Source of the DNA: Macrostomum lignano
Taxonomy: Eukaryota
Assembly (NCBI GenBank): GCA_002269645.1
Contig: NIVC01004303.1
Span: forward strand, 1 to 51,261
Length of the DNA stretch: 51,261 nucleotides
Direction of reading: 5' to 3'
This document shows positions 25,601-28,600 of the stretch, in pieces (the first letter of the stretch is position 1; each line of letters starts with the position of its first letter). The position numbers were made by a program, and so were the translations under genes. Below the pieces are notes generated by a model that saw only the letters and a list, made by a program, of their open reading frames with translations, was not told the DNA's origin and searched no databases.

Positions 25601-28600
25601 AGGAAGAGATGAGAGGAAGCGAGGAAGAGATGAGAGGAAGTGAGGAAGAGATGAAAGGAAGCGAGGAAGAGATGAGAGGAAGCGAGGAAGAGATAAGAGG
25701 AAGAGATGAAAGGAAGCGAGGAAGAGATGAGAGGGAGCGAGGAAGAGATGAGAGGAAGCGAGGAAGAGATGAGAGGAAGCGAGGAAGAGATGAGAGGGAG
25801 CGAGGAAGAGATGAGAGGTAGCGAGGAAGAGATGAGAGGTAGCGAGGAAGAGATGAGAGGAAGCGAGGAAGAGATGAGAGGGAGCGAGGAAGAGATGAGA
25901 GGGAGCGAGGAAGAGATGAGAGGGAGCGAGGAAGAGATGAGAGGAAGCGAGGAAGAGATGAGAGGAAGCGAGGAAGAGATGAGAGGAAGCGAGGAAGAGA
26001 TGAGAGGAAGCGAGGAAGAGATGAGAGGGAGCGAGGAAGAGATGAGAGGAAGCGAGGAAGAGATGAGAGGGAGCGAGGAAGAGATGAGAGGTAGTCTAGT
26101 AGTGGTATAGATAAGAGAACAAGTAGAGCATGAGTGCTTCTGGAGTTCTGCACTAAACAGCTGCCAGAGAGAAGTGAATTTTGGCAGCAGTTTTGCTATA
26201 TTTTCCAGTTAACAAGCTATGAGTTTCAAGTGCCCTCTCAGCTGTTCGCTCGTTCAGCCACTCTGCCAATCTCGCCACTTGGCCCCCGCTCGCTCTTCGT
26301 GACTTCCTCTTGTCAAATTTGCGTGCACTTCATGCTCCGATCTCTCTCAACTAACAGCTATATATATTATATATTCAGTTTATAATAATGCCATTTAGTT
26401 TAGAAACTCGAGGAAGGGAGGCTTCTATAGCAATTTAGTCATTTTTTAGGTTTTCAGCTTTATATGAAGCCAATTAAATTCGAAATGTCTGTTTCGTGCG
26501 CCTCGGTGTGTCTGGGTGTACTTTTACTGGCCTTTTTTCATAGGAGTCATTGAGATTTTCTCGGGTAGGTAGGAGTGAAGTAAATCTATTGGATACAGAT
26601 AGATCGTCTCTTAGATACTCTCTCGGTATCTGAGATATTCTCTTAGTATCTTAGATATTCTCTTAGATAGTCTTTTAGATATTCTCTTAGTATCTTAGAT
26701 ATTCTCTTAGATAGAGAATTAGAGACTTAGAGAGAGAGAGAGAGAGAGAGAGAGAGAGAGAGAGAGAGAGAGAGAGAGAGAGAGAGAGAGAGAGAGAGAG
26801 AGAGAGAGAGAGAGAGAGAGAGAGAGAGAGAGAGAGAGAGAGAGAGAGAGAGAGAGAGAGAGAGAGAGAGAGAGAGAGAGAGAGAGAGAGAGAGAGAGAG
26901 AAAGAGAGAGAGAGAGAGAGAGAGAGAGAGAGAGAATAGATAGAGAATAGAGATAGAGAGATGTTAGAGGTAGAGGGAGATAAGAGGGAGTGAGGAAGAG
27001 ATAAGAGGAAGCGAGGAAGAGATGAGAGGGAGCGAGGAAGAGATGAGAGGGAGCGATGATATCTTAGTATCTTAGATATTCTTTTAGATAGTCTCTTACT
27101 ATTTTTTATAAATATTCATATACGTATTAACAATAGATAGATCATCATATCTTATATACAGCCTCTCCTGAAAGTATAACTTTCATATTATGTAACCTAG
27201 CGAAACCTTTTACTGTTTATAATGGAAGAAAGTGCAAAAATACCAAAGCTTAAGCAGCCAATGGCAGCCAATAGGAACCCTGGAACAGTTTCTGTTGGCC
27301 AAAGGGGAAGAAAGTTGCCTGCAAAAAACCTGCCACAAAATTCTTCTGCGACCAAGCAATAAAATCTCTTGGTTTTTCAACTGTCCGCTCAGCTCTTGCT
27401 GCTAATTAATAAACAATAAATCAGCAATCTGATGGGTTCCAATCTGAGTAGCCCCGTGAGCAATCGGCAATCCACCGCCACCAAGGCCGCCAGCAATTTC
27501 TGGCACGAGATGACCAGCTTCGACGCCAATTACCATGGCAACGGCTATTGCATTGTCTCTTCTCCTAGTGGCATTCTTGCCCTGCCTCAGCAGCCGGCCT
27601 CCAACCTGGCCAACGATTTGGGCAAGTCCACGCCCCAGTCTGAAGAGGACAACAGCGCCGTCCAGGTAGACAGCAGCAGCCTGCGGGAGTTCAACACCAG
27701 CTATGCTTATTATTCAACGGCTATGCAGCTGCAGCTGCGGGCTCGCCGCCACAATGCCAGCGTTGTCAGGGCGGCTGGGTCGGCGGCTGAGCCGCCCAAG
27801 CTACCGCCTCGTCGGCCGCCGACTCTTAGCTTGGCTCAGCATCAGCTTCATCATCAGCAGCATCATCAGCAGCATAATTACGTTTACAGCGTTGGCTATG
27901 CCGCCCCGAATCAGTTAGCCAAGCCTACCGCCGATGACTCGTTGCCATGGAAACTAAAACAACAGAAGCAGTTTCCTCCTCCTCATCCACCGCCGCCTCC
28001 GCCTCCCCCTCCACCAGTGCAGCAGCGCCTCAGCTTGATGCCTCATCACCAGCATCATCAGTCTGCTCCTGTCACTCCGTTCGATTGTCAGACAGCTTAT
28101 CGCGGAGCTGGCAACCTCCGTCAGCGTCAGCGTCGACAGCAATTAAGTTATGCGTCACCAATGCCGAACCTTGAGATTGCTGCTGCTGCTGATTTTGCTT
28201 GCGACTGGCGGCAGCAGCAGCAGCTCCAGATTGACTTCTCCTGTTGGCTTCAACTGCCTGCGTTGGATTGGTCTCTTGACTCCTGTCTGGATAGCATTGA
28301 TAGTCCAAAGCTGGGAAAAATGCTTTATAGAGACAGGTGAGAGATGTGCTCAGCTTCTTTATTGCTGTCATTTAGGAGAATTTTGACTGAAGTTTTAGCT
28401 ACTTAATGCGTGTCAGGTCATTATCGTAGGCTACCAGTAAGTGTCAGGTCATTAGTTTAGACACCAGTAATTGTCAGGTCGTTAGTGTAGACTATTAAGT
28501 GCCAGGTCATTAGTTTAGACACCAGTAATTGTCAGGTCGTTAGTGTAGACTATTAAGTGCCAGGTCATTAGTTTAGGCTATTAAGTGTCAGGTCATTAGT

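Follow-up and report, generated by a model that had tools for sequence, protein, structure and literature searches.

Some protein kinase genes also give rise to products without a kinase domain, such as telokin (MLCK gene) and alphaKAP (CaMKII-alpha gene), the latter with a unique membrane-anchoring N-terminus. The case described here, an alternative 5′ or cassette exon that possibly yields a non-kinase isoform of a kinase gene, belongs to a well-known class of mechanism. FRNK and PRNK are kinase-less C-terminal isoforms made from a promoter in an intron of the kinase gene, and FRNK, which derives from FAK, is a dominant negative (PMC1570463). Within the SLK/LOK kinases, the C-terminal part of human LOK (LOK-C), when present alone, is found at microvilli and acts as a competitive inhibitor of ezrin phosphorylation by LOK (PMC5400502); a natural kinase-less isoform of SLK or LOK was not found in a limited literature search. 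Shorter transcripts arise in Schistosoma mansoni from promoters that lie within long introns and from acceptors there that take the spliced leader (SL) (PMC5832876). Here we analyzed a stretch of 51,261 nt from Macrostomum lignano (GenBank assembly GCA_002269645.1, contig NIVC01004303.1, positions 1 to 51,261, forward strand; hereafter the window), which carries a gene assigned by its predicted domains to the SLK/STK10-type (GCK-V) Ste20-like kinases. Intron 7 of this gene contains an open reading frame (ORF) that is probably a coding exon (27432-28336) and that might head a kinase-less isoform of the kinase.

The proposed isoform resembles FRNK in its internal start within a long intron, in the retention of the C-terminal regulatory region and in the absence of the catalytic domain. 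It differs from it in that promoter, leader exon and protein of FRNK were shown experimentally, whereas the SLK case is known from DNA sequence alone. In addition, the unique 5′ exon of the SLK gene would encode ~300 new residues, and FAK is a tyrosine kinase unrelated to GCK-V. With LOK-C, the flatworm product would share the same PKK/coiled-coil tail, but LOK-C is an engineered fragment and not a natural isoform. The S. mansoni introns offer a likeness within the flatworms, namely a long intron with an internal acceptor able to serve either cis-splicing or the spliced leader and an N-terminally shortened product. In M. lignano, however, the acceptor deviates from the extended SL motif and the AUG of the leader would be out of frame.

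Results

An open frame in intron 7 of an SLK-type kinase gene

The assignment of the host gene is based on both ends of its predicted protein. Pfam Pkinase was recognized on exon 1 alone with E = 4.6e-19, in line with an N-terminal Ser/Thr kinase domain, and exons 8-10 matched the PKK domain (PF12474) with E = 3.5e-11 and 43.8 bits (cut-off 25), in line with a C-terminal PKK/coiled-coil domain. The exon map was obtained by placing two M. lignano proteins onto the window, BOX15_Mlig006021g1 (P0001, 1215 amino acids) and UniProt A0A1I8HL07 (P0007, 1603 amino acids), both of which contain PF00069. The predicted C-terminal part showed 98% identity to BOX15_Mlig006021g1. After the M. lignano proteins, the next-best matches were fish proteins named 'STE20-like serine/threonine-protein kinase' (SLK), and the flatworm SLK tail was ~27% identical to vertebrate SLK. 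Two extra genomic copies of the locus were taken from the Mlig_3_7 assembly, NIVC01001388.1 (L001) and NIVC01001175.1 (L002). Since M. lignano is a hidden polyploid, they are considered paralogous or redundant copies.

An earlier, sequence-only reading of this DNA had placed intron 7 at 23472-44459, in phase 2, and within it a frame that begins MGSNLSS and ends in a phase-2 donor. Our mapping agrees with this architecture. Exon 7 (23338-23471, in both mapped proteins) ends ...QFID + CG with the phase-2 donor GTGAGT (GAT CG|GTGAGT), and exon 8 (44460-44850, REQLREQKLL...) is the first exon of the coiled-coil C-terminal region. The intron between them measures 21 kb; the average intron in M. lignano is ~1.1-1.4 kb long (PMC5730564). 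The ORF extends from 27432 to 28340 on the forward strand and encodes 302 amino acids. Its part up to the donor, the optional exon at 27432-28336, consists of 301 codons and 2 bases (MGSNLSS...KMLYRD + AG) and ends ...AGA GAC AG|GTGAGA at 28336/28337. The phase-2 donor (GTGAGA, 28337-28342) is the same in L001 and L002, and as CAG|GTGAGA it is the best consensus match among all donors of the gene. The TGA at 28338-28340 that closes the ORF is thus explained by unspliced read-through of this donor. Joining 28336 to 44460 gave ...KMLYRD-R-REQLRE..., in frame as anticipated and parallel to the ...QFID-R-REQLRE... of the exon 7-exon 8 join. All kinase exons lie upstream of the optional exon. As a unique 5′ exon, the frame therefore provides in the DNA a start codon at 27432, a phase-2 donor at 28336 and a reading frame continuous into exon 8, with the kinase exons bypassed.

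Coding signal in three copies of the locus

The length of the ORF exceeds what base composition would generate: in dinucleotide-preserving shuffles of 27240-28420, none of 3000 contained an ORF of at least 302 codons, the maximum being 270 (P < 3e-4). GC contents at the three codon positions of the optional exon were 0.62/0.48/0.60. Its third-position value (GC3) is lower than the 0.81 of the kinase and coiled-coil exons but like the 0.58-0.59 of its undoubted neighbors, exons 5, 6 and 7; after this comparison, low GC3 was dropped as a sign against coding.

The ORF is intact in both sister copies, with 297 amino acids in L001 and 303 in L002, and start context and donor are unchanged. Changes among the three copies amounted to 7 synonymous and 6 non-synonymous ones in the optional exon, without a stop. 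When the same substitutions were read in the other two frames, the ratios were 3:10, and 4:7 plus 2 stops, so that the synonymous excess is seen only in the frame of the exon. Under the substitution spectrum of unique intron sequence, the probability of at least 7 of 13 synonymous changes and no stop was 0.026. Non-synonymous divergence (pN) of 0.004-0.006 corresponds to about a quarter of the unique-intron divergence of ~0.018 per site, and synonymous divergence (pS, ~0.03) was not lowered. Elsewhere in the gene, synonymous to non-synonymous ratios were 4:3 in exon 6, 16:5 in exon 3 and 8:0 in the kinase exons. The 7:6 of the optional exon resembles exon 6 and is looser than exon 3 or the kinase exons. 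These values point to mild purifying selection on the optional exon across the copies. The three indels among the copies (of 3, 6 and 12 nt) each leave the frame intact, which is weak evidence because slippage of triplet repeats keeps the frame regardless of coding. Judged from frame, composition and copy comparison, 27432-28336 is probably a genuine coding exon that is put to use.

Further downstream in intron 7, the segment 39710-40440 was identical to L002 over 731 aligned bases and differed by 1.7% from L001, with neighboring sequence ~2% from both. The pattern suggests gene conversion between the copies, and any conservation argument at this locus is therefore complicated.

Gene models and database searches

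The description of the exon as hidden is not fully correct. A HMMER scan against 1.84 billion representative proteins returned one real match, A0A1I8HL07 ('Protein kinase domain-containing protein'), which carries the exon at residues 906-1208 with one extra Gln and is otherwise essentially the same; the exon is thus not strictly unannotated. In this protein the sequence reads ...QFIDR-NLMGSNLSS...KMLYRDR-REQLREQ..., that is, the exon is built in as a cassette between exons 7 and 8, with acceptor 27424 and donor 28336, an arrangement that had been named as an alternative. A0A1I8HL07 derives from a locus copy with the extra C in exon 10 described below.

Another coding stretch that is optional and of low complexity, with tracts of poly-Q and poly-A, is found at ~18897-19580, within the ORF 18678-19919. 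It is partly present in A0A1I8HL07 as 'exon 4' and is left out by two 1215-amino-acid models of the Mlig_3_7 assembly (P0001 and P0005). Among the three copies, the ORF of 'exon 4' differed by 3 synonymous and 9 non-synonymous substitutions and by large in-frame indels of 3-42 nt, and it looks neutral. Since A0A1I8HL07 includes this neutral stretch that the other models skip, we suspect an ab initio component in this model.

The second HMMER match to the exon, P0008, was rejected as spurious, being limited to poly-proline. A search of the exon against a word-indexed protein database gave no match, and the fused isoform retrieved from it only M. lignano SLK and weak fish SLK matches to the tail. 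This search missed A0A1I8HL07 although the protein is in the same collection and the query is near-exact, and the HMMER scan alone found it; a negative from the word-indexed search by itself would therefore mislead. Nothing meaningful was obtained with the exon against Pfam and PDB sequences, exact look-ups of the stand-alone ORF product gave no record for any copy, and in M. lignano papers, their supplements and expression tables neither the gene IDs nor SLK/STK10 were found. In these searches the exon is, so far, found in M. lignano only, and without relatives outside the species a deeper test based on the ratio of non-synonymous to synonymous substitution rates (dN/dS) is not possible.

The region upstream of the exon and the choice of acceptor

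The acceptor aaatcag|C at 27424|27425 (AG at 27423-27424, exon start 27425) leaves an open frame that continues exon 7 in phase (R-N-L-M-G-S...). It is used by the A0A1I8HL07 model and is also a candidate SL trans-splice site. It had been described as pyrimidine-poor, and with a pyrimidine content of 0.40 versus 0.55-0.75 it is indeed the lowest among the acceptors of the gene. A branch-point-like CTAAT motif (27402-27406), kept in the three copies, lies 19 nt before the AG. An in-frame TAA at 27417-27419 ends the frame 4 codons ahead of the ATG; the ATG at 27432 is the third codon, 7 nt past the 27424 acceptor, which is the only acceptor upstream of it.

Two other acceptors would lead to different products. 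The pyrimidine-richer acceptor with AG at 27160-27161, kept in L001 and L002, would open an exon at 27162 that reads exon7-R-L-S-stop, with the TGA at 27169-27171. It is possible that it defines an alternative terminal exon, in which case the kinase would end before the coiled-coil tail. Inside the ORF lies a stronger in-phase acceptor at 27567-27568 (tgtctcttctcctag|T), with a pyrimidine content of 0.80; a cassette entered there would measure 768 nt and lack the first 45 codons (FID-R-GILALPQQ...).

The stretch at 27247-27424 is near-invariant and free of ATG, and is a candidate promoter/5′ leader or splicing-control region. Among the three copies, 1 variable site was present in these 178 nt versus 3.9-8.6 expected. 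As evidence for a promoter, this conservation was set aside: it reached P = 0.002 against an inflated neutral rate and ~0.1 against a conservative one, and we do not rely on it. No ATG occurs in the 171 nt upstream of the start (the last one is at 27261; P ~0.07). The pair of CCAAT boxes noted before is present at 27258-27262 and 27268-27272, 10 bp apart and 174 and 164 nt before the ATG; it comes from a tandem 10-mer (AGCCAATGG CAGCCAATAG) and is identical in L001 and L002. Three AATAAA hexamers (27358, 27408 and 27415) are clustered at 27358-27420, the only other one in 27000-31500 being at 31460. Two readings are conceivable: they may serve an upstream terminal exon as poly(A) signals, or they may represent TATA-like/A-rich leader sequence.

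The predicted product

The product of the exon would be rich in P, S, Q and A and of low complexity, with no hydrophobic segment, and is most probably a disordered head with short proline motifs. The motifs listed in the sequence-only reading were all recovered, namely PKLPPR, a class II SH3-ligand pattern, at residue 122, FPPPHPPPPPPPPPP at residue 181 and a His/Gln tract after residue 135. MGSNLSS, identical in the three copies, fits the PROSITE N-myristoylation pattern G-{EDRKHPFYW}-x(2)-[STAGCN]-{P}. By our own estimate, this motif occurs by chance in ~1.5% of random Met-starts, and a similar share of real proteins is myristoylated, so that the motif carries almost no weight either way. 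Myristoylation of the product itself is doubtful.

A length of ~697 amino acids had been given for the whole kinase-less product. In the sister copies it would be 692-698 amino acids, but in the window exon 10 is short by one base and the C-terminal ~140 residues would be frameshifted. At 46283-46284 the window reads GGGACTACGGACGAC and both other copies read GGGACTACCGGACGAC; with one C absent after 46283, the last ~140 residues of the kinase would be out of frame with the annotated exon 9/10 join (45701->46265). A weaker donor at 45693|45694 (GAGA|GTCTGC) would mend the frame (...MFRES-NKPGTTDDE...). The absent C could be an indel introduced by the assembly, or the copy may be in decay, or a shift in splicing may compensate for it.

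Other features of the window

Upstream of exon 7, protein mapping placed SLK exons on the forward strand at 13296-13670, 16573-17005, 17447-~18105, ~21605-21931 and ~22390-22922, with the optional 'exon 4' stretch at ~18.9-19.6 kb between the third and fourth of these. Downstream of exon 8 are exon 9 (45333-45701), which is part of the PKK domain, and exon 10 (46265-46692), which reaches to the TAG stop.

Intron 7 consists mostly of minisatellites. Between 23480 and 44395, we found 26 copies of a 42-nt unit (23480-24574), 35 of a 21-nt unit (25348-26091), (AG)117 (26729-26961), 64 copies of a 31-nt unit (28410-30316), 311 of a 22-nt unit (31481-38298) and 41 of a 32-nt unit (43069-44395). In this and other introns, the minisatellites give rise on both strands to spurious ORFs of great length, with a maximum of 1514 amino acids. 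None of the other long ORFs of the window, two in intron 7 included, had a Pfam match. Rfam gave a weak tRNA match in intron 7 at 41586-41655 on the reverse strand (32.1 bits, gathering score 29), where ARAGORN found no tRNA; the match may be due to chance or to a repeat derived from a tRNA. Neither the Rfam nor the ARAGORN scan showed anything bearing on the optional exon.

An upstream neighbor lies on the opposite strand at ~7560-9052 (reverse strand). Its counterpart in L001 (3754-7585, reverse strand) is annotated there as a 471-amino-acid protein with a FAM47 Pfam match, and the window ORFs that match this neighbor, scanned singly, had no Pfam match.

Discussion

We propose that 27432-28336 may serve as an alternative 5′ coding exon that is joined by its phase-2 donor to exon 8. 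Transcription would start within intron 7, somewhere in the 27.25-27.43 kb stretch, or, alternatively, the transcript would receive the spliced leader at acceptor 27424, and translation would begin at ATG 27432. The product would combine a disordered proline/glutamine-rich head, possibly N-myristoylated, with the PKK/coiled-coil tail, and would have no kinase domain. By analogy with LOK-C, it would be expected to reach the sites of ERM activation and to inhibit the full-length kinase competitively. The exon can also be read from exon 7 as an in-frame cassette, and both uses may coexist. The existence of the kinase-less isoform is a tentative proposal, to which we give somewhat less than an even chance; inclusion as a cassette, which does not exclude it, is possible to a similar degree.

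Several features fit an internal start: the closeness of the ATG to the acceptor and to the preceding in-frame stop, the pairing of the weakest acceptor of the gene with its best donor, an upstream stretch that is free of ATG and nearly unchanged among the copies, the conserved CCAAT pair and the precedent in S. mansoni. A number of observations weigh against the proposal. The sole public model that contains the exon, A0A1I8HL07, uses it as a cassette and not as a first exon, and exact look-ups of the kinase-less product in its versions from the window, L001, L002 and the UniProt model found no record. The two Mlig_3_7 models of 1215 amino acids splice exon 7 straight to exon 8. We infer that they derive from the genome-guided transcriptome annotation, whose pipeline retained no isoform below 75% of the major one (PMC5730564); they are for this reason weak evidence and indicate only that the exon is absent from the major mRNA. 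The start codon has a C at position -3. As to the spliced leader, the 35-nt M. lignano SL ends in ATG (PMC8629364), and its addition at 27425 would set the leader AUG out of frame, with an upstream ORF of 9 codons (MQSDGFQSE and a stop) spanning the MGSNLSS start. The acceptor AATCAG agrees only in its CAG with the extended SL motif [T/C]TNCAG, a motif that is itself present at only 9551 of 21754 M. lignano sites (PMC8629364); the presence of a cis donor ahead of this acceptor in the primary transcript would depend on where transcription starts. The exon had no homologue outside M. lignano in the HMMER scan of 1.84 billion representatives, the selection test is weak because the copies differ by just 1-2%, and gene conversion among them could imitate local conservation.

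That the exon is a cassette and nothing else we regard as unlikely, though well worth reckoning with. Starting at 27425 it would comprise 912 nt, and starting at 27569, 768 nt, and it would insert a disordered linker of 256-304 amino acids into the full-length kinase, between its central region and the coiled coil, the ATG and MGSNLSS being coincidental. Both lengths are divisible by 3 and open when joined to exons 7 and 8 and, because both exon boundaries are in phase 2, inclusion or skipping keeps the frame. A0A1I8HL07 is built in this way, composition and substitution pattern are like those of the adjacent disordered exons 5-6, the in-phase acceptor at 27568 is much stronger, and the branch-like CTAAT before the 27424 AG is compatible with such use. 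However, we estimate from 6 Met in 302 amino acids that only ~6% of such cassettes would carry an ATG this close to the acceptor, in the first three codons, and the in-phase AGs count for less since AGC and CAG codons make them frequent in the exon frame. Moreover, the acceptor chosen in A0A1I8HL07 is the weakest of the gene, in a model whose added neutral 'exon 4' (3:9) hints at an ab initio component. Rather less probable is that the frame is not an expressed exon at all but an unexpressed or recently decayed frame in a low-complexity, triplet-repeat-rich intron, picked up by one gene predictor. Such a frame would be without homologues in other species, without Pfam domain or PDB relative and skipped by both 1215-amino-acid models of the other assembly, all of which is the case; the 15 variable sites of the exon are near the conservative neutral expectation of ~20, and every indel lies in a triplet or hexamer repeat, where slippage would keep the frame anyway. 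It would not account for the length of the ORF, for a synonymous excess specific to the exon frame, for a donor that fits the consensus and has the phase needed for exon 8 or for codon-position GC contents like those of real exons of the gene.

Two further explanations involve a separate transcript. A stand-alone nested gene, intronless and encoding a 302-amino-acid protein that ends at TGA 28338-28340, would fit an ORF that is complete from ATG to stop and the conserved upstream stretch. We give it hardly any credence: the stop codon lies within the consensus donor CAG|GTGAGA, no AATAAA follows for 3.1 kb downstream, where a 1.9-kb minisatellite of the 31-nt unit directly adjoins, the 73 nt that follow the stop change as fast as neutral sequence, and no such protein is on record. 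It is also very unlikely that the SLK locus is processed like a two-cistron operon, with the kinase split from its own regulatory tail. Exon 7 would then be spliced to the acceptor at 27161|27162 and the message would read ...FIDRLS-stop, followed by a 3′ untranslated region of ~200 nt up to the AATAAA cluster, giving a kinase without the coiled coil. Acceptor 27424, 4-60 nt past the AATAAA signals, would take the spliced leader and give the kinase-less mRNA headed by MGSNLSS. In operons of M. lignano, intercistronic spacing peaks at ~100 bp (PMC8629364). If such a split were true, the catalytic and the autoinhibitory/localizing halves would come from one gene as independently tunable proteins.

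The public models of this gene disagree (1215 versus 1603 amino acids), and minor isoforms can vanish from current annotation. Should it turn out to be unexpressed or no more than a cassette, the exon would count among the ordinary young, lineage-specific exons that encode disordered sequence, and would matter little more widely. M. lignano is amenable to transgenesis and RNA interference. If the alternative 5′ exon is used as we propose, it would add a natural kinase-less member to the SLK/LOK kinases, with a C-terminal domain acting in trans in one flatworm lineage only, where the mammalian counterpart, artificially expressed, both localizes to and inhibits the ERM-activating kinase.

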